Assembly: GCA_004764695.1 (NCBI GenBank)
Contig: SMSO01000020.1
Span: forward strand, 1 to 34,409
DNA: 34,409 nucleotides
Direction of reading: 5' to 3'
Source of the DNA: Schizochytrium sp. TIO01
Taxonomy: Eukaryota; Protista; Bigyra: Labyrinthulomycetes
The first letter of the stretch is position 1; the number at the start of each line of letters is the position of its first letter. Positions 13,124 through 31,473 of the stretch are shown one piece after another. The notes beneath the pieces are model-generated. The model was not told the origin of the DNA. It searched no databases and was given only the letters and a program-made list of their open reading frames with translations. A program made the position numbers and the translations under genes.

Positions 13124-16100
13124 ATGATGACTCCTGGAGGCAGCAAGAAGAGCAATAAGCTCAAGAAGAAACAAGAAGCTGCGGACCAAGCGGCGAACAT
13201 CAAGAAACAGAGTCCCGACTCTGATGAAGACATACGTGAAGAACTACGAAAGCTTAAAGAAAAGCTAGCAGTAGATTGAAGCTTGCACTGACCCTAAGAG
13301 ACAACGTCTACTAGACAGTGCACTTTTCACCTTACTCAGCAATCAAGCTGGTCCAAATTTTCAAAAACAACTACTACATTATGGTAAATCACACCATGGA
13401 CATGAAGGACGCGCTGCCTGGGCACAGCTTCAAATTGCATTTAAAAAACAGCCTGGTGAGACCAATCTTGACAAGGTCACAGCACTCTTACAATGTCTTC
13501 GGAAATACCTTGACAATTCCCTTGAGAGTATGTCAGAAAACGAAATCATGGTATGGTTTATGGAACTATACAACACTCAGTGTGAATTGTTAGCTACTGG
13601 CATGACGTTACATGATTACATGTTTATCCTTAACCTTTTACCACGTATTCGTTACATGGGTCCACAAACAACTGCGATCTATGGCAAAGCAATTAAACTC
13701 AAAGAGTATAGTAAAGAATTGTTTCAAGAGTTACGAAACACGGAACGGGAAGTTGCACAACAATACACACTAAAAGGCAAAAGTGGCTATTCTGCTGGGA
13801 ACCCTGAACCCACACATCTACAAGCAAACTCCTTTCACCCTTCCCGGAACAAGTTCAAGCGTCAAAAACGACCTACATCTCAAAACAACAATTCCGGGGG
13901 AGCACAACAACCCTTTCCTCAAAGGAATAAATGCTCACACTGTGGTTATTCAAATCATGCTGAGGCAAACTGCAAATTCTTGACAGCAATTTGTCCTATC
14001 TGTAACCAAGTTGGACACAGACCCTCTGTTTGTCCACGTAGATCATCGCGACAACAAAAGTCGAACAACAAGCGTCAGCGTCATAATTCAACACCACCGT
14101 ACAAAGGTCTCGCGTTACACAACGCTCCTTTTGATCAAGGACCTTTTCATGCCAATTTCAGTGTCAACCTTCTGACAATCAATCATCTAAAATCAGAACC
14201 GAAGTCAGCAGAGACAACCTCAGAAGGATTCCTACTAGATTCTGGATGCAATTTGCATGTCACACCAAATCTTGCATTACTTTCAAACTATGAGAACATT
14301 AATCCACTATCAATGGATGCAGCTCAAGGATCCTCAGTTCCGATTTTAGGAAAAGGTACCCTGGAGGCACGAGTAAGATCAACGTCGGGTAGAATTGTTC
14401 CTTTAACACTTACAGTCTACTACGCACCTTCCCTTGCTCACACATTACTGTCGACGTCTATTATGACTCAGCAAGGATTCTCATTTTTCTTCTCACAAGA
14501 TAGCGATCGTATGACCACTCCACATGGAGAAGTTATTACACTCGGTCAGCAATCTGACATCCCAATGCTTATCCCTGTAAAAGCACCCAAAGTTAACGCT
14601 CTGCAACTACGGAAAGCACAAAAACTCAGTTATAAAGGAATAGATTGGCTAGAAGCTCATCTTAAATTAGGTCACGCTTCAATTCCACGCATAGCATCCT
14701 CCATAGGAGTTTCTGCATCACAAATCGACTTCTTATGCATGGATTGTAAAGTTGCCAACTTTGAACGTATTCCAGTGACAAAAGGACCTCACACACCATA
14801 TGCTAAGTCTCCTCGACAAGCTGTTACAGCTGATGTGATGGGACCATTCCACGTTCTAGGCATTCCCAACAAGTTCAAATATGCCATAGTCTACAGAGAT
14901 CTTTACTCAGACTTTACATATGTTTATCCTATACAATCCACTGATCAAGTGTCCACGACCCTTCGTACTTTTGCTCAAGCATGGCTCCAAGGTAAAAACA
15001 CCTCGCGCATCATAATTCGCACAGACGGAGCTAAATATTTTACAGGCGGAGAATTTGCAAGATCACTTCACACCATGCGGTGGGAACATAAACTATCTGC
15101 ACCACACTCTCATGCTACAAATCCTGCTGAAGGCATCAATCGAGTACTAATGAATGGTCTTCGCTCCAATTTAAAAACTGCATTACTCGGAGCCAAATAT
15201 TGGCCCTATGCTTTATCTCATGCTGTACATGTCAAGAATCGCACAGCCTCCAGTCGCAATCGGAAATCTCCGTACGAACGACATTTTGGCAAAGCACCAG
15301 ACTACAGCTACTTCCACATTTTTGGAGCACCATGTGTGTTCAAGAAGTTTCCCATTCCGCAAAAGTTGGGAGATAGGGGTGAACTAGGCATTTTCCTTGG
15401 ATATGCTGATAGTTACACTCATGGAACTGTACATGTCTTACCTAAAGACAAGTCCAACATTCTTCAAACGCGTGAAGTCAAGATTTTCGATCAAGCATTG
15501 ACTGAACAAACTCGTCAGCGTGCAATGTCGATAGAAACCGCTCTGACACCTGATCTAATTACTCATTGGACACGTGAAGAATCAAATAAACTAATTGCTG
15601 GAGAAATGTATCAGGATCTACCTGCTTTATCCTCCGCAGCTAATAATACTAAATCTTTCCTCACTCCTAATACCCCAGAATATAATGATGACCGTGAATC
15701 CAATAGTGAACACACTAGTCGTCCGGAGGTAAACAATGATGACCGTGAATCCAATAGTGAACACGCTAGTCGTCTGGAGGGAAATCATAATGACCGTGAA
15801 TCCAGTAGTGAACACGCTAGTCATCCGGAACCCAATCATAATGACCGTGAATCCAGTAGTGAACACGCTAGTCATCCGGAACCCAATCATAATGACCGTG
15901 AATCCAGTAGTGAACACGCTAGTCATCCGGAACCAAATCATAATGACCGTGAATCCAGTAGTGAACACGCTAGTCATCCGGAACCAAATCACAATGACCG
16001 TGAATCCAGTAGTGAACACGCTAGTCATCCGGAACTAAATCACAATGACCGTGAATCCAATAGTGAACACGTTAGTCATTCTGAGGTAAATAATGATGAC

Positions 16101-18019
16101 CGTGAATCCAAAAGTGAACATGCTCGTGAAGACATGGAACTAGAACATAGTTCAGTCCATGCACACGATAGTCATCGGAGATCCAAAAGGACTCCCAAAC
16201 CTCATGTACCACTAAATGTTGGTCCCAGTGCCAAAGGCGCTGCAAATAAATACCGATACTATACCAATCGTCTGAAACGAAAACGTAATATGACGAATAC
16301 AGAGTTAGATTTCTCGGATATTAATTCTCTATCAAAAGAAGAGAACTTACATGAACTAATCATTCCCACGATATATCCGAGGGAACAGGAATATTTTGCT
16401 TTTCTTATTAAAACCAACACAGATAATAAACAATTACCTAAACCGGTCCCAAAACCATGTCCATATGACGACATTGTAGTTCCAAACACTTATAAAGAAA
16501 TGCGGAAACTGCCTCAGGCATATCAGCAACTATGGATCGCTGCGATGAATACTGAACATCACAATCTGCAGTCCGCTGGTGTTCTGGAAACTGTACCCTT
16601 ACACACTTTACCACAGGGACAGACTGTAATGGGAACTAGATGGGTCTTTACAAAGAAGGCACCACCGGTCAATCTGTTAAAAGCACGGGTTGTAGTACAA
16701 GGCTACAATGAGGCCATTGAACATGTTTATGATATATACTCACCAACAGTTAATGTTGAAAGCATTCGTGTTGCAACAATTATTGCTTTAACGAGAGGCT
16801 ATGATGCTATCACCGTTGACGTAACAGCCGCATTTCTAGAAGCACAAATTCCAGATGACGAATTCCTCTACATCAAAGGCATTGAAGGTCTTGACTTAGC
16901 AGAAGGTTATTGTTATCGTCTGCGTAAAAGTCTATATGGACTCAAAAGTGCCCCCCGTAGGTGGATGGATCATTTGACGGCTATATTAGAAAATTATGGC
17001 TTAACACGATCTATAACGGACGCATCACTCTTTATTGGCAAAGATCTTCTAATGACTATCCATGTTGATGACATGAGAATTTTTGGCACGCCCCAAGCAC
17101 TCAAAGCGATTGTCAAAGAACTCGAACAAATGTCGGCGTCAAAGTTAATCGTGAAAAACAATGCCATTATCTTAGTGATACACATGTCTATGACAAGTCA
17201 CGAAAGATCTGTACCATCAGCCAACGCGAGTATTGTGAAAAAGCCCTTAGGCGATGTAATATGGAAAACTGCAATGGAGCTAAGACTCCATCCATCCTTA
17301 AAGAGTTAAGTGATCATCCTGACGACTCTGTGAATGAACACTATCGTCCACTTGTCGGCACTCTAATGTATTTACTAAAAACTCGACCGGATATGGCATA
17401 CACTTTACACCAACTTGCATGTCATGGTCAAAAGAATGGAGCGGAACATATGCAAGCTCTTAAACATGCATTCCGTTATGTCAAGGCCACAAAGGACAAA
17501 GTTCTAACACTCAAAGGCGTGGATTCAGAGGCACAACTTGTTTTGAACGTCTATACAGATGCTTCTTTCAGCAAGGCACATGACAAACTTCGTCGTAGTG
17601 TTACAGGATATGTTGTTATGATAAATGATAGTGCTGTTGTATGGAAAACAACCAAACAGTCTACAGTTGCAAGAAATACTCACGAAGCTGAACTAATTGC
17701 TGCAGTTGCAGGAGTTCTCAGAGCAGAATCCATTCGACAACTTTTAGCAGACATGAACATTTACATCAATGAAATACAGGTATATATAGATTGTCAAGCA
17801 TTAGTAAACACAATCAAAAAGGAAGAAGTTAATGGTACAAATGGTTATCTCGCAGTACAACTAGCAGTACTGATTCATCGAAGACAAAACCAATTACTCA
17901 AGGTACATCATGTTAAAGGCACAGAAAATATAGCTGATTTACTTACCAAACCACTTGCAGCACCATCTCATTGGAAACACGCTAGTCGCTTACTTGATGC
18001 TTCAGGTGCTGACGCGTGA
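13124..18019 (+). pseudogene. Copia gag-pol polyprotein with frameshifts near 13274 and 17128 (main ORFs 13530-17309 and 17261-18019)
   Basis: Two CCHC knuckles (CSHCGYSNHAEANC, CPICNQVGHRPSVC); protease FLLDSG; HHCC motif HLKLGH...CMDC; integrase ADVMGPF / IRTDG / AEGINR; RT KSLYGLK and HVDDM; RNase H YTDASF, EAE, ENIADLLTK. The RT reading continues in the second frame from ~17129 (NVGVK...ISQREYCEKALRRCNMENC). True start uncertain. Confidence 0.9.
15684..16130 (+). repeat. Nine in-frame 51-bp (17-aa) tandem repeats in the integrase-RT linker
   Basis: GACCGTGAATCC at 15690, 15741, 15792 ... 16098; peptide HNDRESSSEHASHPEPN. Confidence 0.95.
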
Positions 18020-18308: not shown

Positions 18309-19048
18309 CACCCTTGTTGGAGAATGGCCCCATACTCTCGTCGTTAATTACTTTGCAACAGCTTGTTGGTCATTAAATCACATGTGTCATTTAACATTTT
18401 GCCTGGCAGCTATAGAAAAGCAATCGTCAAGCTTCCCCATAGACGTTGTTGCAAAAGCTGTTGCATTTTCATAATTTATCGAGCCTTCTCAAACTTGTAG
18501 AGGTCGCCCTGAGTAAACTATGAACTTAAAGAAGCTGAAACTTGAGTAATCCGAATATGACAACCGAAATTTTCGGATGGGGATCTGAGGAACTTGAAAA
18601 CGGTTTTCAAATTCACATTCAAAACTCCAAAATACGTATGAAGAACTATGGACTTATAAGGCATTATTAAACGTAAGGGTGGATTTATTTTATTCATGCA
18701 ATGACCCTCAAGCACTTTTTTCTAAATGCAACCTACTACGGAGTTTTGAGCATCACGGCAATTTTTCACTTCACATCTTGAAAATCACTGATTGCCACAT
18801 GCACGTTCACTAGTCGTGTCTTGTGCTCTAACATCTTTCAAAATATTGTCTATGACTCTTACGGCGTTTAATTTATTCGCTTCTTAAATTGTCAATATTA
18901 GTATTCAATCAAAATGTTTCCATCACCTACACGCTCTATATTATGATGATTAATATTTTCTAGTACGTTCATAATCCTGAAAATCTACAAAATTGTAATA
19001 TCAATCACATAGTTAAATATACAGCAACAAGGTTTAATAAAGAATAAA

Positions 19049-22000
19049 CTATTTAGAACTATTTTTATTCAAAATATAAGGGCCTAGACATCCCAATGCT
19101 CCACGAAAGGCAACGTTTGCAGCTTCCAGCCCATCAAGCTCTACTTTCTGCGCAGAAAGATAATCCTCTTTCGAACTCAGCTCATTCGAGCTGTTAACAG
19201 GCCAGGTTTGTGTAAGAAGACTACGCTTCACTGAAAACGGCGGAGAAAGTGCATCGTTCACAACATGTATACAACGAAGCTCACGAGATATCTGTTCAAG
19301 CATTTTCCTTCTTGCCTTTGCAGAATAAATTTCTTTATTAAACTGGCGCTCCTTGTACATTTCATCCGTCAACCCATCGGACATTCTAAGGATCAGTAAA
19401 AACCAAATGACATCAACTCCGTTCGTCAGTTAACAATTTCACGTCATCAAAAGGCACCCACAGTATTGCCAGTACAGTTTCATTTATTCTCTGATATTAT
19501 CATGTTGTTTGTTACATCCACAATCAACCAAACAAAACAATTCCGCAATAAACTTGCAATGACGCGAAGAAAAACATCGGCAAAACAACACAGGAGACAA
19601 CACAGGAGACAACCCATGACGCAACCAACCAACCAAGTCTCATGCACAAACCAGTACACGAGCTATCGCTTAAACAACTTACTCAAGTAATGTCAGCGAC
19701 CAGTTCACTTTTAGCGCCGCACCCACTGCCTTGGCGCCCTCTGAGCCGATACTGTTGTATCCAAGACTGTTGATTTGATTGAATGATGAAAAGCAATACA
19801 TTACACGTTACATATTACAATAAATGCACGCATACATGCATGGACGTGAGTGATCTAGGTTGGCTTTCACCATTTATCTTTGTTGTGTTGTCATTTTGCT
19901 CTTTCTTCGATGGATGTATACTCACCCAAACAGACAACCCATCCATCCATCAAACAAACAAGAGATTGCATAAACTTGCAAAACAACACCGACCCACCCA
20001 CCAAACAACAAACCAAGCTTCATGTACAAACAAGTCCACGAGCTGCGGTGTTGCGTAGACAACTTACTTGAGTGATGTCAGCGACCAGTTCTCTTTCAGC
20101 GCCGCAGCCACTGCCTTGGCGCCCTCTGAGCCGATATAGTTGCTTTGAAGACTGTCGATTTGATTGAATGATGGCAAGCAATACATTACAAGTTACATAT
20201 TACAATAGATGCACGCATGCATGCATGGACGTGAGTGATCTCGGTTGGCTCTCAGCATTTATCTTTGTTGTGTTGTCTTGTCATTTTGCTCTTTGTTCGA
20301 TGGATGTATACTCACCCAAACAGACAACCCATCCATCCATCAAACAAACAAGCGATTGCATAAACTTGCAAAACAACACCGACCCACCCACCAAACAACA
20401 AACCAAGCATCATGTACAAACAAGTCCACGAGCCGCGGTGTTGCATAGACAACTTACTTGAGTGATGTCAGCGACCGGTTCTCTTTCAGCGCCGCACCCA
20501 CTGCCTTGGCGCCCTCTGAGCCGATATAGTTGCTTTGAAGACTGTCGATTTGATTGAATGATGGCAAGCAATACATTACAAGTTACATATTACAATAGAT
20601 GCACGCATGCATGCATGGACGTGAGTGATCTAGGTTGGCTTTCAGCATTTATCTTTGTTATGTTGTCATTTTGCTCTTTGTTCGATGGATGTATACTCAC
20701 TCAAACAGACAACCCATCCATCCATCAAACAAACAAGCGATTGCATAAACTTGCAAAACAACACCGACCCACCCACCAAACAACAAACCAAGCATCATGT
20801 ACAAACAAGTCCACGAGCCGCGGTGTTGCGTAGACAACTTACTAAAGTGATGTCAGCGACCGGTTCTCTTTCAGCGCTGCACCCACTGCCTTGGCGCCCT
20901 CGGCACCGATATCGTTGCTTCTAAGACTGTCGATTTGATTGAATGATGGAAAGCAATACATTACATTGCAATGCATTACATTGGATACATGCATGGACGT
21001 GAGTGATCTAGGTTGGCTCTCAGCATTTATCTTCGCTGTGTTGTCATTTTGCTCTTTCTTCGATGGATGTATACTCACTCAAACAGACAACCCATCCATC
21101 CATCAAGCAAACAAGAGATTGCATAAACTTGCAAAACAACACCGACCCACCCACCAAACAACAAACCAAGCATCATGTACAAACAAGTCCACGAGCTGCG
21201 GTGTTGCGTAGACAACTTACTTGAGTGATGTCAGCGACCGGTTCTCTTTCAGCGCCGCAGCCACTGCCTTGGCGCCCTCGTCGCCGATATTGTTGCCCGA
21301 AAGACTGTCGATTTGATTGAATGATGGCAAGCAGTACATTACACGTTACATATTACAATAGATGCACGCATGCATGCATGGACGTGAGTGATCTAGGTTG
21401 GCTTTCAGCATTTATCTTTGTTATGTTGTCATTTTGCTCTTTGTTCGATGGATGTATACTCACTCAAACAGACAACTCATCCATCCATCAAACAAACAAG
21501 CGATTGCATAAACTTGCAAAACAACACCGACCCACCCACCAACCAACTAACCAAGCCTCGTGTACAAACGAGTCCATACACTACGGTGTTCCTAAGTTAA
21601 CTTACTTGAGTGATGTCAGCGACCGGTTCTCTTTCAGCGCCGCAGCCACTGCCTTGGCGCCCTCGTCGCCGATCTCGTTGTCCGAAAGACTGTCGATTTG
21701 ATTGAATGATGGCAAGCAATACATTACACGTTACATATTACAATAGATGCACGCATGCATGCATGGACGTGAGTGATCTAGGTTGGCTTTCACCATTTAT
21801 CTTTGTTGTGTTGTCATTTTGCTCTTTGTTCGATGAATGTATACTCACCCAAACAGACAACTCATCCATCCATCAAACAAACAAGCGATTGCATAAACTT
21901 GCAAAACAACACCGACCCATTCACCAAACAACAAACCAAGCATAATGTACAAACAAGTCCACCAGCTGCGGTGTTGCGTAGACAACTTACTCAAGTGATG

Positions 22001-24253
22001 TCAGCGACCGGTTCTCTTTCAGCGACGCAGCCACTGCCTTGGCGCCCTCTGAGCCGATATTGTTGCTTTGAAGACTGTCGATTTGATTGAATGATGGCAA
22101 GCAATACATTACATTGCAATGCATTACATTGGATACATGCATGGACGTGAGTGATCTAGGTTGGCTCTCAGCATTTATCTTCGCTGTGTTGTCATTTTGC
22201 TCTTTCTTCGATGGATGTATACTCACTCAAACAGACAACCCATCCATCCATCAAGCAAACAAGAGATTGCATAAACTTGCAAAACAACACCGACCCACCC
22301 ACCAAACAACAAACCAAACATCATGTACAAACAGGTCCACGAGCTGCGGTGTTGCGTAGACAACTTACTATAGTGATGTCAGCGACCGGTTCTCTTTCAG
22401 CGCCGCACCCACTGCCTTGGCGCCCTCTGAGCCGATATCGTTGCGCTGAAGACTGTCGATTTGATTGAATGATGGCAAGCAATACATTACATTGCAATGC
22501 ATTACATTGGATACATGCATGGACGTGAGTGATCTAGGTTGGCTCTCAGCATTTATCTTCGCTGTGTTGTCATTTTGCTCTTTCTTCGATGGATGTATAC
22601 TCACTCAAACAGACAACCCATCCATCCATCAAACAAACAAGCGATTGCATAAACTTGCAAAACAACACCGACCCACCCACCAAACAACAAACCAAGCATC
22701 ATGTACAAACAAGTCCACGAGCTGCGGTGTTGCGTAGACAACTTACTTGAGTGATGTCAGCGACCGGTTCTCTTTCAGCGCCGCACCCACTGCCTTGGCG
22801 CCCTCTGAGCCGATATAGTTGCTTTGAAGACTGTCGATTTGATTGAATGATGGCAAGCAATACATTACACGTTACATATTACAATAGATGCACGCATGCA
22901 TGCATGGACGTGAGTGATCTAGGTTGGCTCTCAGCATTTATCTTTGTTGTGTTGTCATTTTGCTCTTTGTTCGATGGATGTATACTCACTCAAACAGACA
23001 ACCCATCCATCCATCAAACAAACAAGCGATTGCATAAACTTGCAAAACAACACCGACCCACCCACCAAACAACAAACCAAGAATCATGTACAAACAAGTC
23101 CACCAGCTGCGGTGTTGCGTAGACAACTTACTCAAGTGATGTCAGCGACCGGTTCTCTTTCAGCGCCGCACCCACTGCCTTGGCGCCCTCTGAGCCGATA
23201 CTGTTGTATCCAAGACTGTCGATTTGATTGAATGATGGCAAGCAATACATTACACGTTACATATTACAATAGATGCACGCATGCATGCATGGACATGAGT
23301 GATCTAGGTTGGCTCTCAGCATTTATCTTCGCTGTGTTGTCATTTTGCTCTTTGTTCGATGGATGTATACTCACTCAAACAGACAACTCATCCATCCATC
23401 AAACAAACAAGCGATTGCATAAACTTGCAAAACAACACCGACCCACCCACCAAACAACAAACCAAGCATCATGTACAAACAGGTCCACGAGCTGCGGTGT
23501 TGCGTAGACAACTTACTTGAGTGATGTCAGCGACCGGTTCTCTTTCAGCGCCGCACCCACTGCCTTGGCGCCCTCTGAGCCGATATCGTTGCTTCTAAGA
23601 CTGTCGATTTGATTGAATGATGGCAAGCAATACATTACAAGTTACATATTACAATAGATGCACGCATTCATGTATGGACGTGAGTGATCTAGGTTGGCTT
23701 TCAGCATTTATCTTTGTTGTCTTGTCATTTTGCTCTTTGTTCGATGGATGCATACTCACTCAAACAGACAACTCATCCATCCATCAAACAAACAAGCGAT
23801 TGCATAAACTTGCAAAACAACACCGACCCACCCACCAAACAACAAACCAAGCATCATGTACAAACAGGTCCACGAGCTGCGGTGTTGCGTAGACAACTTA
23901 CTTGAGTGATGTCAGCGACCGGTTCTCTTTCAGCGCCGCAGCCACTGCCTTGGCGCCCTCGTCGCCGATATCGTTGCCATAAAGACTGTCGATTTGATTG
24001 AATGATGGCAAGCAATACATTACACGTTACATATTACAATAGATGCACGCATGCATGCATGGACGTGAGTGATCTAGGTTGGCTCTCAGCATTTATCTTT
24101 GTTGTGTTGTCATTTTGCTCTTTGTTCGATGGATGTATACTCACTCAAACAGACAACTTATCCATTCATCCATCCATATATCCATCAAACAAACAAACAA
24201 ACCAGCCATTGCACAAACTTGCAAAACAATAACAACAAAAGCAACACCGTGCA

Positions 24254-24329
<76 letters not shown>

Positions 24330-24406
24330 GTGTTAACTTACTCTAAAATTGTAGCACCATTCTGAAGCTGTTCAAGGGCAGCGACAAGACTTGGGTTGTC
24401 CGACAT
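19049..24406 (-). CDS. 14-exon gene for a 469-aa protein with 12 RI-like/NLR-type 28-aa leucine-rich repeats (one LRR per exon) and a ~111-aa C-terminal region of unknown function
   Basis: Exon 1 is 24406-24342 (MSDNPSLVAALEQLQNGATIL). The 84-nt exons are 23985-23902, 23600-23517, 23215-23132, 22830-22747, 22452-22369, 22074-21991, 21689-21606, 21304-21221, 20926-20843, 20541-20458, 20151-20068 and 19766-19683. The last exon is 19385-19049. All 13 introns start GTAAGT, end in CAG or TAG and are phase 2. The spliced CDS is 1410 nt with no internal stop. Repeat consensus xLxxNxIGxEGAKAVxAALKENRSLTSL. Confidence 0.92.
19620..24230. repeat. Tandem array of 12 exon+intron units (378-390 bp, mode 385)
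   Basis: Exon-to-exon spacings are 385, 390, 385, 378, 385, 385, 378, 378, 385, 385, 385; introns are nearly identical to one another. Confidence 0.97.
24255..24328. repeat. (GCAA)n microsatellite inside intron 1 of the LRR gene
   Basis: About 18 perfect copies, ending just inside the intron 1 donor region. Confidence 0.95.
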
Positions 24407-25959
24407 CGCAGCAAGTAAAGATCTATACCTGAACCAGCGTACGCGTGCTTATATCCCTTCAGCTAAGCTCGTGGCGCAGCCCCAGTCGTTGCAGAAGGTT
24501 TCGAACCTGCTGGACGTAAAGCTGCAAGTCGATGACAGAGGTGCGCCCATGGTCTGACTTACTGAGTTACTATGGTTCTCCTTAAGAAGGAGATACTCTT
24601 TAGTGCTCTCGAAGTGAAAGGATATTTTACTATTACGAACCTAACCTTGCCTACTCAGCCTCGGGTTCTGCATGTGCTGACCCCTTTCTTTCTCGCTCTT
24701 TCAAGACTATTCCTATTTCCTAAAGCCTACTCCTAGAATATCTTCTGCAGGGATGCTTGCTGCAGAGGTTCCACTACCACTCTCTCCTAATACTATCTAT
24801 CTTGCACCTAAGTCGTCAAAAAAGTAAGTAAGTGACTATAAATTCATCATGCACCCTCTCTTCAACACATTCGATCATACCACGCGGGTAACACCTCATC
24901 TCATTCGCACTGAGAAGTAAAGTCGCGTAGGGCCGGGTCAGTAGTATGATAGGGGACTGCATGCGAAGCCCCGGTGTTGAATGTTTTTTTCCTCCTTTTT
25001 TTTTTTCTCTTTATTTTTTTCCCCTTTCGAACAACTAAAAAACAGGCAACATCATTGTGCAGAGTCTAAACCTCCTTGAACGCATGCTAATGATATACGT
25101 CATTGAGCTTGTTCACTCGTGGAAGCTGCAGTACTTATTTTCATCGACGAAATCACTTGTACGCAGGGCAAAGTTTGCATTCCGATCACCATTTTGTATG
25201 GAGATCGACTAGAGTGACAATGAGGTGGCCGCAGACGCTTCTTTAAGATGCAAAGAACTTTCTTTGCATTCTGCAATTTTATGGCAAATTAGGGTGAGGC
25301 GTTCACCAAGAGATAGCGTAGATAGAGGAATGAAGGAAAAGAATGGTTAGCATTAACATTCAGGAACTGCTGACAAGGTCCATCTTGTCCAGGTCTAGGG
25401 AGTGGGATTGTGACCATTCTACTTATAGATACACCTATGCGCGCGCTAGTTATGCACAAGCATAACCTTTCTCGTTCAAGTTCATCAAATACTTTCAGGA
25501 GAAATTGGTGTTTACACAATATATTTTTTGGTTGTTGCTGTGTTCTCATGGCAGAAAGAAATACAACCAAAGAAGGCAAATAAAGCTGTAATATGGAGGA
25601 TGGAGCAGACATACCTATGTACATACTTAGCTGTTATACTTCAATTAATTGTCAAGACAACACTGCACTTGCTTCCCTGCTCCTGAGCTTTGAGAGGTAT
25701 AGAAAGCTAGCGATTTAAGGGTTCTACCTGCCCAAGACAAATGAAGAAAGTTTGATCATTTCCGAATTTCGTTCCTCCTTTGTTTGTTCTCAGGAAAGGA
25801 ATAGGATTATTCCTCCACACTTTCCATTTAGAGACGTAGTAGTACTTCTCCAAAGTACTACTGCATATTTACTACTATGATAGTACCTACTTAATATATC
25901 CTAGTACTTGTCAGATTTTTATAAAAATTAAAAGAGTTTTCAAAAACTCTGAAAAAGAA

Positions 25960-26030
25960 AGCGTCAGCCGGGAATCGAACCCGGGGCAGCCGCATGGCAA
26001 ACAGCTATTTTACCACTAAACCACTGACGC
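25960..26030 (-). tRNA. tRNA-Gly (GCC)
   Basis: Minus strand GCGTCAGTGGTTTAGTGGTAAAATAGCTGTTTGCCATGCGGCTGCCCCGGGTTCGATTCCCGGCTGACGC: acceptor stem GCGTCAG/CTGACGC, anticodon loop TTGCCAT, T-loop TTCGATT, and a downstream T-run terminator. Confidence 0.95.
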
Positions 26031-26345: not shown

Positions 26346-29300
26346 TTAGGATGAAGAGTCAATGTCACACACGTCAGAGATGATTTCATCAGAAATTGAC
26401 ATCAGACCATCTGCATCTGCTTGAACTTGGAGGTCCTCGACCGATCCAAATGCTGCGGCCTTGACTCCGTTTCCTATGCGCACAAAAACCAGATATACGT
26501 CATCATCGGTTCCAAGAATCCCGTCAGCACCCTTACGTAAATCTGCAGCTGCCTTCTTGGCACACGTTTTGGGGTTCTTCGGGTATCCGTTAGCCTTGCA
26601 ATCGGTATTTTTGGTGGGATTTCCATCTGTAAGAATAATTGCGACCCTTCGATCAAGCCCAGAACGAATTTCAGTGTTCGCAAAGATTTTCTGTGCCCTG
26701 ATTAGCGCACCGCCAGTACCAGTGCCAGAGCTCACTCTGGGTACTGTATCCATGGTAGTTTGAAACAGACTTTGTGAAGTAGCAATCGTCGAATCAAAAT
26801 CCCACAAAGTAGTCACACTACTGGCAAAACGAACAGCTGCCAGGCGAGAGTCCGAGCTAGTAGAACCGACCTGAAACGCGCTTCCGAGAGCCTGGATAAA
26901 CTCCGTTAACTGGGCCCATTCTGTACTGCTCACGGAACCAGAAGAGTCTAAAATGAACAATACATCATTGACCTTTGGGCCACACGGGATGACAGAAAAC
27001 CCATATGAATTGAGTGTTGGTGCCGCAGTGGGTGCTATGGTGCCGTCATCAGAAGTTGAAGAAGAGTCTTCAGTGGGAGAGGAGGTAGGAGATGCGGTTG
27101 GAGTACACCCTGCCGTAAGACCAGTGATGAAATCAGCAGTTGTAGATTTTTTCTTGCCAGCGCTCTTACGAAGAGAACAAATTTCTTTACTTGCTTGATA
27201 TACCCAAGCTACACAACTAGAAGTACTGTAACAAATCTCTGCGCACTCTTCTACGGAGGCGATGTTACCTGTCTTAAGGAGAGACGCTCCGTTGTACATG
27301 TAGAATTGTGAGTAGCAAGAACTTGGCGAAGGGCAAACAAAAGTGCCTGCGATTGATTTCTTGTTTTTCTTCAGCTTAAAAGTTCCAGATTTGAGCAAGC
27401 ATACCTTGCTCTTTGAGTTCCACGAATAGCCCGTACATTGATCTACGCCGATACAAAGCTCACGGCAAGCATCAATACTCTCGACCGCTTTTTCAGTGGA
27501 CAGTGTTTCACCACCGGACAGTTGAGCTTGGGTGATATCACATCTTGCAAGCGTTGGAGCTGAAGTTGGAGAATTCGTGTCAGTCTCCGATACTCGCACT
27601 TCTGTAGGTGCATCAGTGGGCGAAGGAGTTGTTGGAGCATTTGTAGGTGCATCAGTGGGCGAAGGAGTTGTTGGAGCATTCGTAGGTGCGTCAGTGGGTG
27701 AAGGTGTTGTTGGAGCATTTGTAGGTGCATCAGTGGGCGAAGGAGTTGTTGGAGCATTCGTAGGTGCATCAGTGGGCGAAGGAGTTGTTGGAGCATTCGT
27801 AGGTGCATCAGTGGGCGAAGGAGTTGTTGGAGCATTCGTAGGTGCATCAGTGGGCGAAGGAGTTGTGGGAGCATTCGTAGGTGCGTCGGTGGGTGAAGGA
27901 GTTGTTGGAGCATTTGTAGGTGCATCAGTAGGCGAAGGAGTTGTTGGAGCATTCGTAGGTGCATCAGTGGGCGAAGGAGTTGTTGGGGCATTTGTAGGTG
28001 CATTCGTAGGCGAAGGAGTTGTTGGTGCATTCGTAGGTGCATCAGTGGGCGAAGGAGTTGTGGGAGCATTCGTAGGTGCGTCAGTGGGTGAAGGAGTTGT
28101 TGGAGCATTTGTAGGTGCATCAGTAGGCGAAGGAGTTGTTGGAGCATTTGTAGGTGCATTCGTAGGCGAAGGAGTTGTTGGTGCATTCGTAAAATAGCGA
28201 GCCCGTCCGAAGTTAAAGGCAAATGTCATCGTGTTATAAGTCTCCCCGTTCCACACCCAGTATACATCTGTATCAGTCAGACCCTCAGCTGGTAGACCCC
28301 AGACACCGTTGCCATTTTGAGTATAGACTAAATCTTTTGAAGATGCATCTGTGAGGGTTGGTTCGATGTACCACTCTAAAGAATCAGGGTCCGCATTCAT
28401 TACTGTGGACCCGTTCGTTACATATCGTGTTCCACATGCATCAATCACAGCTTGAAAACCTCCAACAGAACCCACATCTTTACATTCGAATTCAAGATGT
28501 GTGTTGTCAGTCAAATTGATAGTCTTCGTGAATGTGTTTTCCCATTCTGTGATGTCCCATTCTCCTGTACGATCGCTCGCCAATTCTACAAATAAACTGT
28601 CGTCAGACAATTCGTATTGTCGAAATTGCAGATAATTGTCACACCGAGCCTCAATTGTTGCAGAGGTGCACTCCTCGCTAGGACATTCCAAATTGAACCC
28701 AAATGTCATGGTATTGAGGTTATTGTCATTCCAAACCCAAAATGTATCTTCATCTTTGAGTCCGCTGCCAGTACTTCCCCACTTACCAGCGCCCATAGCC
28801 GTATAGACAAGGGTTGAAGATGAGGAGTCAGACTTGTCAGGGTTGATGAACCATTCGTATGGGCTTGGGTCACTTTCAAGAGTAACACTTTCATCCGTGA
28901 TAAACCTGTATCCGCAAGCTTCAATTTCCGCCACAAAGCCTCCGACATCGGAAATATCTTTGCATTCGAATTCTAAATGGGTCTTACCAGAAAGATCGAC
29001 AACTGTAGTGAACGTCTCTTGCCAGTTCTCCAAATCCCAATCACCAGTGCGATCGCTAGGCTCTTCGACATAAGCGTCATCCGTCAATTCGTATTGGCGG
29101 AACTGAAGCTTATTGTCACATCTAACTCTGATTGTAGCATTATTGCAGTTGCAGAGATCAGCATTGTATGAACCACTTGTAAAAAGCTTGGTTGGGCTTT
29201 GGGTCGGGGATGCGGTAGGTTCTGGCGTGGGTTTTGCTGTCGGTTTTGATGTGGGACTGTGCTTTTGCCCCCAATAAAGTACCCTTCGATCTCCCACTGC

Positions 29301-29489
29301 ATCATCGCTTTCTACGGGAATATTCGCAGCCAAAGTAAAGAGTTTGCGGCTATCTGTTGTAGCTTCGATCTCAGACTCCGCTGCCAAGTCATGAACAACG
29401 CTTCCAGCAGGTTTTGCAGCTTTTGCCATGTAAATTATGGCTACGAGGGCTACAAGAGCAGGGGCAAACCATCTGTGAGGGTTCCGCAT
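26346..29489 (-). CDS. Secreted/surface adhesin-like protein: signal peptide, two ~155-aa duplicated domains, Thr/Pro mucin stalk, two PAN/Apple-like domains, C-terminal vWA domain
   Basis: Uninterrupted ORF (track gives 26346-29588 from a TTG; likely ATG at 29489, MRNPHRWFAPALVALVAIIYMAKA). PAN-like CRELCIGVDQCTGYSW..CLLK and CAEICYSTSSCVAWVY..CSLR. vWA DVLFILDSSGSV (DxSxS MIDAS) and IILTDG. Confidence 0.88.
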   Translation of the reverse strand: MRNPHRWFAPALVALVAIIYMAKAAKPAGSVVHDLAAESEIEATTDSRKLFTLAANIPVESDDAVGDRRVLYWGQKHSPTSKPTAKPTPEPTASPTQSPTKLFTSGSYNADLCNCNNATIRVRCDNKLQFRQYELTDDAYVEEPSDRTGDWDLENWQETFTTVVDLSGKTHLEFECKDISDVGGFVAEIEACGYRFITDESVTLESDPSPYEWFINPDKSDSSSSTLVYTAMGAGKWGSTGSGLKDEDTFWVWNDNNLNTMTFGFNLECPSEECTSATIEARCDNYLQFRQYELSDDSLFVELASDRTGEWDITEWENTFTKTINLTDNTHLEFECKDVGSVGGFQAVIDACGTRYVTNGSTVMNADPDSLEWYIEPTLTDASSKDLVYTQNGNGVWGLPAEGLTDTDVYWVWNGETYNTMTFAFNFGRARYFTNAPTTPSPTNAPTNAPTTPSPTDAPTNAPTTPSPTDAPTNAPTTPSPTDAPTNAPTTPSPTNAPTNAPTTPSPTDAPTNAPTTPSPTDAPTNAPTTPSPTDAPTNAPTTPSPTDAPTNAPTTPSPTDAPTNAPTTPSPTDAPTNAPTTPSPTDAPTNAPTTPSPTDAPTNAPTTPSPTDAPTNAPTTPSPTDAPTEVRVSETDTNSPTSAPTLARCDITQAQLSGGETLSTEKAVESIDACRELCIGVDQCTGYSWNSKSKVCLLKSGTFKLKKNKKSIAGTFVCPSPSSCYSQFYMYNGASLLKTGNIASVEECAEICYSTSSCVAWVYQASKEICSLRKSAGKKKSTTADFITGLTAGCTPTASPTSSPTEDSSSTSDDGTIAPTAAPTLNSYGFSVIPCGPKVNDVLFILDSSGSVSSTEWAQLTEFIQALGSAFQVGSTSSDSRLAAVRFASSVTTLWDFDSTIATSQSLFQTTMDTVPRVSSGTGTGGALIRAQKIFANTEIRSGLDRRVAIILTDGNPTKNTDCKANGYPKNPKTCAKKAAADLRKGADGILGTDDDVYLVFVRIGNGVKAAAFGSVEDLQVQADADGLMSISDEIISDVCDIDSSS
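27603..28191 (-). repeat. About 15 in-frame 39-bp repeats (TNAPTTPSPTDAP), mucin-like stalk
   Basis: Seen directly in DNA and translation. Confidence 0.95.
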
Positions 29490-31246
29490 GATTCGTAACT
29501 CTCGATGGAATGATCTCCTTTTCAGATTTGCTTGATGGATCGATCTCCTTTTCGGATTTGCTGGCACAATCTGGGCGCCGTATTTCAAGCACGTAAGGTG
29601 GAACTAATCTCAAAGATGAAAGTAACTAATTTATGAAAGGCTTAGAATGGGACACCAACACAAAATGTGAGAATCAACTTGTCCAGCTTCTTGATGAACC
29701 GCAGTGCAGGCTCCGCGCTCATGGATATTTCGGAATTTTTTTTTTAAAAAATCACTATTTTTAAAAAGTAGAAAGAGGTTTTTTAATTTAAAAGGGAAAC
29801 ATATGACTGGGTGATATTCGCTCTGATATTTCTGACTAAGGCGACGGAGCAACAATTAACAACGCAACTGAAAGAGGAGATGCGTGTCCATGAGCTTGTT
29901 TTGGAAGGACATTCCGCGCAAGAAACAGAAAAGGCGGCGATTGATAGACTCAGACTGTTTGTTAACAGTATAGACCAGATTTAATGACTTTTTTGAGGAG
30001 TTTTCAAAGTGTTGCATGACCCATCTAATCCTGTTACCTCTTCTCAAATGGAGTAATTTTTATTTCAATAACGGATTTTTTACATTTAATTTAATTTTTT
30101 TTAAGGAAGATAATAAGAACAGTGATAGAAAAACATGTAGAAATCACCATACAGCAGGAAAGTGGATCCTTGTGAGACAATTGTGAGAATAGGGCAAGCT
30201 GAGGTTTTTTGGCGCGAGGAAAAAAAGTGACTAACTTCACCCAAAATATCTTCTTTGTGACATGTGACAAGTTCAAGTTGTATGAATCCTGAAGTTGAGG
30301 GTTCCTAGTCAAGGAATTAGGAACCTCCAAACAGGATACCATTGAACCAGCATGCACCCACGACTTGAGTGTATAATCACCACTCATTGAGTATACTATG
30401 AGAGGCGTTATTGAACATTTTTGCTTACTTTTGAAAACCTTCTAAAAGTATACTATCGCTTTCATTGCCAGTCTACCCAAAATCTATTTTTCTGTACCTG
30501 CTATGCAGCAAGAAGGCTCACATACCTCACAAAACCATCTCGTTTTTTTAAGAATCTCTTGGGCAAATAACATCGCTTTTAACTATGTTTTTGATGCAAC
30601 TATTCGCACACAAAGTCAAATCGTTTTAAAAGTCGCAAATCATTTCAAAAAATAAGCAATAACACTTTTGTTGCTTAAGAAACTATGAAATGTGCTTGGA
30701 GAATCTGTCCTAGTGGTTTTAGAATTGTGCAAAACACAGTATAATGATTTGTTCCAGCCGTAAGACACTGTTCAAGTCCTTTAATACGATTTCAACGTCT
30801 CTCTCTTGCAACCTATCAAAATTGAGTTTTTTGTTATGGATCTGCTCAAATATCAACATGAAATGTCACACCTCTCCATTCTTTTAGATATACCGACTTG
30901 ATGTAGCTTGCGCACATAGACCAAAGTAAAGGAAAGCTGAGCACTTTGCACTTCACAGCGCTGGTTTATGCAACTTCGGTATTTAAATTGAACGCTTTCA
31001 GTTATACAAGGTTTGGTCAAGCGTTCAGTCTTAGGGGAGAAAGGGGAGAACCCTCCTTTAAAAAGGGGCTCTCAGAAAATAGCGATGGTTGCTCTTGGCT
31101 ATCATTTAGAGCCTACTACATAACATCAGGATAGGCACTTTGGTTTGTTCACCAGCAATTAGTTCGAGGTTTTAGATTGCCGAAAGTTACTTTACTTTTC
31201 AATATGATCCAAACGATTCAATACCAGCAATATTCTTCTAACTTAT

Positions 31247-31473
31247 TATTGAAGTAATATACAGCTACTGTCTAACCTAACCTAACCTAACCTAACCAAG
31301 CCCTCATGTCCGACACATCCTGTGTACCGGACTGACATCATACATTCATTCCTGCCTGTATCCAGACCTGAAACCCCAATAACTCATATATCATCCTCTT
31401 TCTCTTTTTCCTGAGTTCGTCATCCTTGTCAGACTACCTCTCCACGCTTCACAGCTCAGGCTACTCTGCAATA
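31247..31473 (+). mobile_element. Solo LTR of the same copia family (227 bp)
   Basis: TATTGAAGTAATATACAGC...CTACTCTGCAATA flanked by the 5-bp TSD CTTAT (31242-31246 and 31474-31478); 30 nt longer than the LTRs of the full element. Confidence 0.96.

Follow-up and report, generated by a model that had tools for sequence, protein, structure and literature searches.

What keeps twelve neighbouring repeats alike in their introns and in most of their exon letters, and different at the same few codons? The question is raised by a tandem array in a contig of the labyrinthulomycete protist Schizochytrium sp. TIO01 (GenBank assembly GCA_004764695.1, contig SMSO01000020.1). The window analysed here is that whole contig, 34,409 nucleotides (nt) long, or 34 kb of a 64-Mb genome. 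On its minus strand, from 24406 to 19049, the array is a gene made of a start exon, 12 phase-2 exons that each encode a leucine-rich repeat (LRR), and a tail predicted to be helical, and this intact, spliced gene is located within the spacer of a subtelomere-type ribosomal DNA (rDNA) unit. The reading argued for here, to which a probability of about 70% is given, combines an intact spliced LRR gene with concerted evolution of its units, selection for diversity of the protein surface, and a function as a binder. The parts of the gene are the following.

24342..24406, minus strand: start exon, with an ATG at 24406, an open frame of 21 codons plus 2 nt, and a GTAAGT donor at 24341
23986..24341, minus strand: first intron, 356 nt, its 3' ~220 nt homologous to the unit intron
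23902-23985, 23517-23600, 23132-23215 and 22747-22830, minus strand: LRR exons 1-4, each one 28-amino-acid (aa) LRR of the ribonuclease-inhibitor (RI) type
22369-22452, 21991-22074, 21606-21689 and 21221-21304, minus strand: LRR exons 5-8, each one 28-aa RI-type LRR
20843-20926, 20458-20541, 20068-20151 and 19683-19766, minus strand: LRR exons 9-12, each one 28-aa RI-type LRR
19683..23985, minus strand: the whole LRR exon array, 12 exons with eleven introns of 294-306 nt between them
19386..19682, minus strand: terminal intron, 297 nt, GT..AG, its splice joint present in run contigs and in an open reading frame (ORF) from MMETSP
19049..19385, minus strand: terminal exon encoding the 112-aa tail, with the stop at 19049-19051

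Tandem Repeats Finder describes the array as a 385-bp unit in 11.7 copies (19674-24170, 93% matches). Read on the minus strand, each unit consists of an exon, with AG before it and GTAAGT after it, and an intron of 294-306 nt. The exon is open, bounded by AG and GT, and 84 nt (28 codons) long in all 12 cases; its first base completes a codon split by the preceding intron, and its last two bases open the next codon, so that all introns are in phase 2. The start exon ends in the same phase, which fits exon 1, gives the first half-strand (..ILD), and is kept in a near-identical copy of the gene on another contig, C31. The first intron contains a (GCTT)n microsatellite (24254-24329). The predicted product is 469 aa long, and its N-terminus is not hydrophobic. 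No Pfam family was matched by the tail, for which the AlphaFold2 (AF2) model of a homologue, P0002, predicts helices at 151-190 and 215-249 with low confidence. There is no room for a NACHT or NB-ARC domain in the gene model 24406..19049, and none is encoded by the long ORFs of the window. A Roc-COR module is likewise absent from the gene, which ends in the unmatched tail.

The repeat class is that of the ribonuclease inhibitor. Similarity searches were run exon by exon. Single exons gave Pfam LRR_6 scores of 22.0 bits (E = 1.4e-4) and 15 bits (E = 0.026), both below the cut-off of 23.4 bits. One 27-aa exon compared with the PDB matched RI-like axonemal proteins at E = 1e-13 to 1e-10, NOD2 at 1e-8, and ribonuclease inhibitor at 8e-6. 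Beyond the window, a genome sample of 30 loci of ~3.4 kb yielded 15 array segments with 131 exons, every one of them open and bounded by AG and GT. With random codons at the three hypervariable positions of each exon, the chance of finding no stop in 393 codons would be ~6e-9.

Evidence for splicing comes from public data. Contigs of four public runs were placed on 19000-24500; three of these runs are guessed to be RNA (one of them, X1, is flagged as probably DNA), and the fourth, X19, is DNA-like. In X2 and X7, depth is high in the bins that bear exons and near zero in the bins that hold intron only. A joint in X7 (19385|19683) omits exactly the predicted 297-nt intron, with CT..AC ends, and a loose end at 19385 in X1 reads precisely the first 17 nt of exon 12. 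Neither the X7 joint nor the X1 loose end occurs in X19. An MMETSP transcript ORF, P0005, also spans the last junction (..KVNWSLTLL/EMSDGL..), and the surface residues in its LRR differ. The gene structure and the splicing of its last intron are direct observations. At many other joints in the runs, variable letters differ between conserved sides, which is the picture of spliced paralogue transcripts. These joints were not used as evidence of exon skipping, since identical exon 3' ends and the mapping of paralogue transcripts to this locus make skipping indistinguishable from misplacement.

The variation within this exon is narrowly placed. Counted from the exon's 5' end (the window coordinate is the exon end minus the position plus 1), the variable nucleotides are 5-10 (codons x7 and x8), 14-16 (x10), 23-25 (x13), 45 (an Ala/Gly site in the helix), and 82-84, which comprise a synonymous base of Leu27 and the first two bases of the split x5 codon. 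Nucleotide diversity (pi) in the window averages 0.448 for the 14 variable nt, compared with 0.054 for the introns (301 columns) and 0.035 for the framework (70 nt). In 97 units from 11 other non-redundant arrays, the corresponding values are 0.545, 0.060, and 0.052. Segregating sites number 12/14 among the variable positions versus 53/301 in the introns (Fisher p = 1.6e-7). The variable codons are 8-9 times as diverse as introns. A description of this locus made earlier from the letters alone, referred to here as the sequence-only reading, had proposed the comparison of codons with introns as its own test, and the factor of eight in the window bears it out.

Other details of that reading can be judged from the same alignment. 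Its twelve LxxNx tetrads, in transcript order, were reproduced letter for letter, as was the residue after IG (D, S, or A); the split junction codon, given as N, D, or Y, is AA|T, GA|T, or TA|T; and both strings that it called invariant are present in 12/12 exons on the minus strand. The term "hypervariable" was too broad, since only x7, x8, and x10 are truly so, with 16, 12, and 13 distinct amino acids in the 97-unit sample and 72 distinct 9-nt haplotypes among the 97 units. The codon x13 is essentially dimorphic (TCA for Ser or GAC for Asp), and x5 has few states. Differences of 2-3 nt per codon between exon pairs occur mostly at x7 and x13, whereas x8 and x10 differ by 1-2 nt. Variation was said to be confined to the binding face, which is slightly too strong: it holds for x5, x7, x8, x10, and x13 but not for two further sites. 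Exon nt 45 switches codon 15, in the helix, between Ala and Gly with a pi of 0.45-0.53 and does not lie on the binding face. Exon nt 82, the synonymous third base of Leu27, has a pi of 0.6-0.7 and is trimorphic and tied to x5: C goes with Asn in 35/36 units, T with Asp in 27/31, and A with Ser in 17/17. This linkage looks like the hitchhiking of old haplotypes or like a splice-site effect. The exon ends in CAA, TGA, ATC, or ATA, and nt 82 (for example, window positions 23904 and 23519) sits at -3 of the 5' splice site. The introns do have the length of about 300 nt given for them, but they do not differ at scattered sites only: introns 4, 5, and 8 have a common block variant of ~30 nt with an indel, and the 5' part of intron 7 is divergent. 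Framework changes are present in exon 12.

The variable residues are positions x5, x7, x8, x10, and x13 of LxxLxLxxNxIGx, that is, in the beta-strand and at the start of the helix. A structural view is offered by P0002, a natural 250-aa MMETSP protein that was found by the tail search and has five RI-type repeats and a homologous tail. In its AF2 model, DSSP assigns the strand to L-x5-L-x7-x8-N-x10-I and the helix from x13 onward, with a confidence score (pLDDT) of 70-88 in the LRR part, and the model matches NOD2, the LRR of NLRP1, tropomodulin, and ribonuclease inhibitor. The variable residues would thus fall on the strand and the first helical residue, as modelled in P0002, and not on buried or convex positions, in agreement with what had been predicted for them. 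The strands of an LRR solenoid form its concave face, where the x residues that come between core leucines are exposed to solvent. Residues Tyr434, Asp435, and Tyr437 of human RI presumably fall at x7, x8, and x10. These three are experimentally confirmed hot spots of RI (PMC9939524). In brown-alga ROCO proteins, the selected sites likewise lie on the concave face (PMC3341825, PMC11378527).

How far does this pattern extend? The unit has at least 364 matches on at least 16 contigs, with 90-100% identity including introns, and many of them lie within ~120 kb of contig ends. The tail exon is found in at least 100 copies with 36-100% aa identity, mostly open. Because at least 100 tail exons exist and many are directly downstream of arrays, the combination of LRR array and tail makes up a gene family with roughly a hundred members. 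Homologues of the tail include P0001 (88%), P0002, and P0003; a protein homologue search with P0002 as query returned P0002 alone. In arrays whose tails are 56-60% aa-identical to that of the window, the introns of the units are still ~94% identical to those of the window's units. Median intron-flank distances are 0.05-0.07 between arrays versus 0.056 within the window array, with minima of ~0.01. Over the range of tail identity from 100% to 56%, flank distance does not track tail identity in the expected direction (rho 0.31, p = 0.29). The nearest neighbour by flank is in the same array for only 30/97 units, which means that exchange reaches across chromosomes. The homogenisation of framework and introns is real, and the sequence-only reading was right about it: flanks are alike between arrays despite the low identity of their tails.

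The complete LRR gene occurs a second time, nearly identical and with a tail of 100% identity, at a depth of 3.16 Mb in C31 (G000:C31:3162594-3168642). Homology between this copy and the window begins at the 5S gene. The copy represents either an rDNA-type unit in an internal position or the 34-kb contig assembled twice. Relative to the window, this copy has TGA replaced by ATC at nt 82-84 of exon 6, TCA replaced by GAC at nt 23-25 of exon 11, and nt 45 changed in two exons, the surroundings of the changed patches being unaltered. The introns of the two copies differ at 12/3295 nt. When recent pairs are pooled, variable-class sites are changed at 10/420 nt versus 23/7198 for introns (p = 7e-6; counted as events, p = 0.017). 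The x13, codon-15, and x5 patches show no linkage disequilibrium despite lying within 60 nt of each other. Such swaps of whole patches are best read as short-tract gene conversion.

The same units also occur next to a different kind of gene. On contig C35, an array of the same unit family (2637023-2642916, plus strand) lies directly upstream of an 855-aa frame on the same strand, with a Roc match at 2643549-2644187 and a TIR_2 match at 2645484-2645810. Open frames of ~850-870 aa with Roc and TIR_2 are found at ~20 places in the genome, several of them within 10-70 kb of contig ends (for example, C35:2643549-2645810, C30:10355-12637, C8:67398-69653, and C32:39531-41792). These Roc-TIR frames are a gene family, at least one member of which is fed by the same 385-bp LRR units, and the family link to signalling genes is partly confirmed.

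The closest known system is that of the brown-alga ROCO genes. In Ectocarpus and Saccharina, these genes have one LRR per exon, phase-2 introns, variable copy number and order of the repeats, and four positively selected concave sites, and LRR-only loci lie beside Roc-bearing genes (PMC3341825, PMC11378527). The two systems share a stramenopile host, one LRR per exon, symmetric phase-2 introns and, on C35, a Roc and TIR frame that follows an array of the same family. They differ in the repeat itself, which is a 72-nt exon for 24 aa in brown algae and an 84-nt exon for a 28-aa RI-type repeat here. The introns of the present system are uniform in the manner of a satellite (pi 0.054), a helical tail replaces Roc-COR, and the arrays lie inside subtelomere-type rDNA units. 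The brown-alga authors have proposed LRR-only loci as shuffling reservoirs (PMC11378527). The LRR-plus-tail genes of the spacer could similarly serve mainly to donate variable exons by conversion to Roc/TIR receptor genes, with their own protein secondary. The C35 arrangement fits such a role, and the patch swaps and free re-assortment amount to exchange between arrays. However, start, tail, and stop are all present in the gene, making it complete; both RNA-like data and an MMETSP transcript have its last intron spliced out; stops are found in 0/131 exons; and the upkeep of at least 100 tail exons, mostly open, points to a working protein. As a main function, the reservoir is therefore rather improbable, although it can coexist with the reading of the family as a repertoire of binders.

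The next question is what keeps the five positions different. Synonymous third positions among the variable codons (exon nt 4, 10, 13, 19, and 22) have a pi of 0.04-0.16. As an example, the third base of x8 is C in 89/97 units, while its first two bases have a pi of 0.75 and 0.48. The rate of nonsynonymous difference (dN) at x7/x8/x10 reaches 0.82 for the window units and 1.15 for the sample units, against a synonymous rate (dS) of 0.03-0.065 in the framework. All four bases are used at variable sites, with no adenine or cytosine bias. Stops are absent from x7/x8/x10, and aliphatic residues are rare (8/291 variable codons). The quiet of the neighbouring synonymous sites points to selection on the amino acid and away from a local mutation hot spot; we infer diversifying selection as the cause of the variable residues. 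One could consider instead that the surface positions are neutral, with unconstrained codons that keep old differences and conversion tracts that halt at mismatched patches. The few multi-nucleotide haplotypes at x13 and x5, with nt 82 travelling along with x5, do resemble old lineages more than repeated adaptive change. Neutral sites inside converted tracts, however, would be expected to be homogenised with their flanks, and here the synonymous bases in and between those codons are homogenised, the replacement bases having reached saturation. The lack of stops, the near absence of aliphatics among the 291 variable codons, and a diversity 8-9 times that of introns also make neutrality an unlikely account.

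The tempo of change sets a further limit. How far two units differ at x7/x8/x10 is unrelated to the distance between their flanks (rho 0.005), and in pairs with flanks 1-2% apart, 56% of the x7/x8/x10 nucleotides are already different. In three independent recent array-duplicate pairs, by comparison, 23/7198 intron nt and 0/234 nt at x7/x8/x10 have changed. As the changes in recent duplicates are patch swaps, the statement that the coding sites "diverge faster" describes a pattern only and not a steadily higher mutation rate. Programmed diversification, in which a targeted mutator or somatic cassette assembly of the kind found with variable lymphocyte receptors (VLRs), diversity-generating retroelements, or AID would write the variable codons, could draw on the extreme focus of the variation, on the full uncoupling of x7/x8/x10 from their flanks, and on the presence of a copia-like element with reverse transcriptase (RT) 1 kb downstream. 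A tenfold rate, however, predicts ~7.5 changes in the recent duplicates (P = 6e-4 for none), by which clock-like hypermutation at x7/x8/x10 is rejected, and the ~80-fold rate implied by the uncoupling would predict dozens. The balanced use of the four bases and the untouched synonymous neighbours do not fit a mutator either; no template repeat was found, and the retroelement has the gag, integrase, and RT of an ordinary insertion. Programming of this kind is thus very improbable. The sequence-only reading had left the choice between diversifying selection and targeted diversification; its observation is confirmed, and its interpretation is supported as regards selection, while the unchanged 234 nt and the lack of base bias speak against targeting.

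Several other known systems were compared as well. RI, NOD2, and NLRP proteins share the 28-aa repeat with the L..N.IGD.GA motif and a fold that the P0002 model matches. The present gene differs in having no NACHT, no alternation of 28 and 29 residues, and an own exon per repeat, and the RI, NOD2, and NLRP proteins are not known to form hypervariable within-genome families in this manner. Identity as a nucleotide-binding LRR receptor (NLR) is ruled out by the lack of a NACHT domain. The VLRs of jawless fish, which have shorter repeats and capping modules, arise by somatic assembly of flanking cassettes. With them the present arrays share variable x positions of LxxLxLxxNx on the concave sheet, a conserved scaffold, and cassette-wise diversity; unlike VLRs, the arrays are germline, no somatic change was seen, and x2 and x3 are invariable. 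A VLR-like mechanism is improbable, as the gene is complete in the germline assembly. A diversity-generating retroelement is ruled out too, with all four bases used, no template copy found, and the only RT being copia-like. Subtelomeric contingency families, such as var, VSG, and the yeast adhesins, encode surface antigens or adhesins of pathogens. These resemble the present family in being large, in lying near chromosome ends, and in forming mosaic variants by exchange between ends, and differ from it in that here the gene encodes a presumably cytosolic LRR protein of a free-living protist and is linked to rDNA.

The position of the gene between rRNA genes connects it with repeats that have already been published. 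The RNA genes of the window, all found with Rfam, are these.

24867..24985, plus strand: 5S rRNA gene (RF00001, 96.5 bits), divergent from the LRR gene and one edge of the spacer
7993..9781, minus strand: 18S rRNA gene, the other edge of the spacer
7756-7906, minus strand: 5.8S rRNA gene, after the 18S
4255-7610, minus strand: 28S rRNA gene, after the 5.8S
25960-26030, minus strand: tRNA

At the chromosome ends of Aurantiochytrium limacinum, Group 0 LORE-TEARS form ~9 units of ~385 bp between the 18S and the nearest 5S; they were said to have no GenBank similarity and were proposed to serve chromosome-end maintenance, and in that preprint the word "leucine" occurs 0 times and LRRs go unmentioned (10.1101/2023.06.15.545109). 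The unit length of ~385 bp and the tandem position between the 18S and the nearest 5S are the same in both, with ~9 copies there and 12 here; the difference is that here the units are read as the exon-intron units of a spliced gene. That the array is a structural chromosome-end spacer with an incidental coding look, as the published description would have it (10.1101/2023.06.15.545109), is scarcely credible in the face of 131/131 open exons with conserved splice sites and phase, variation with codon periodicity, RI-type LRR matches, spliced junctions in RNA-like data and MMETSP, and the presence of a start exon and a conserved tail exon. The DNA of the array may have an additional structural role.

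Taken as a mechanism, the repertoire reading would run as follows. The product would be a cytosolic 469-aa protein with a short N-terminus, twelve RI-type LRRs, and a helical tail. Its units, meaning exon framework plus intron, would stay ~94-95% alike, both inside this array and between it and dozens of paralogous arrays located on other chromosomes, through concerted evolution by gene conversion and unequal exchange. At the same time, selection for amino-acid diversity would keep the five solvent-facing positions of each repeat (x5, x7, x8, x10, and x13) different, and short conversion tracts would re-assort the surface variation between repeats. Five positions in twelve repeats would place ~60 variable residues along the inner beta-sheet and in the loops that lead from strand to helix. 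The protein most likely uses this variable surface to bind other molecules, and the family would be a repertoire of binders, possibly for the recognition of non-self or of viruses. A more speculative extension, which we regard as doubtful, is that the uniform introns are the homology tracts of a germline diversity generator, by which more than 100 LRR genes at rDNA ends and the internal Roc-TIR genes would swap binding-surface cassettes through short-tract conversion.

Of course, a number of points weigh against the repertoire reading. With no change among the 234 nt in recent duplicates, ongoing diversification at x7/x8/x10 is not observed. Inside the variable codons, the Nei-Gojobori ratio of nonsynonymous to synonymous proportions (pN/pS) is only 1.3-1.5, owing to saturation, and a strong ratio needs framework dS or introns as the neutral reference, which are themselves homogenised. 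All data come from one genome. The high variability of nt 82 and its linkage to x5 find no explanation in selection at the protein level, and the positions were mapped by way of a homologue and canonical LRR geometry. As for expression, the runs are only guessed to be RNA, with X1 marked as probably DNA; they consist of short assembled contigs that map to many paralogues; and the last junction is the sole one confined to this locus and its C31 twin. Lastly, the gene has no signalling domain.

If the repertoire reading is right, a repeat class published as a non-coding chromosome-end spacer is made up of exons and introns from the genes of a large recognition-type protein family. The signature is unusually clean, with scaffold and introns homogenised across chromosomes and five surface residues per repeat kept different. 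Shuffling of LRRs by one exon per repeat, so far a matter of brown algae, would reach a stramenopile that is unicellular and heterotrophic, as well as repeats of the RI/NLR type, and LRR exon shuffling would be tied to subtelomeric rDNA. A literature search returned nothing relevant on hypervariable LRRs of thraustochytrids or on exon-per-LRR families of the RI type under concerted evolution. According to the literature, the organism carries mirusvirus elements. Were the idea of a diversity generator true as well, a single-celled host would have a recombining receptor repertoire, perhaps directed against resident mirusviruses, and this would be the counterpart, on the side of the host, to subtelomeric families of antigens in parasites. 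Since the organism can be cultured and is amenable to genetics, conversion, selection for diversity, and possible antiviral recognition are open to experiment.

The rest of the window holds several elements unrelated to the LRR array. The copia-like retroelement (13530-18019, plus strand) has inserted into the part of the rDNA spacer that separates the LRR gene from the 18S. It has an ORF of 1259 aa, with zinc knuckle, protease, integrase, and RT, followed by one of 252 aa, and the longer of the two contains an internal tandem repeat of 51 bp x 8.6 (15688-16124). Downstream of the 28S, a tandem repeat of 415 bp x 6 (763-3260) agrees with the "Group 1" spacer repeats already described in print; in contrast to the 385-bp class, it has no obvious LRR coding, as no LxxLxLxxN motif turned up in a simple six-frame scan. 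Adjoining the tRNA and the 5S is an intron-less ORF of 1080 aa (26346-29588, minus strand) with two PAN/apple domains and a VWA domain, in which a 39-bp x 15 repeat encodes a Pro/Thr-rich linker. It is probably a secreted adhesive protein. The telomere-like pentamer CTAAC is repeated 5.2 times at 31272-31297, internally and far from both contig ends.

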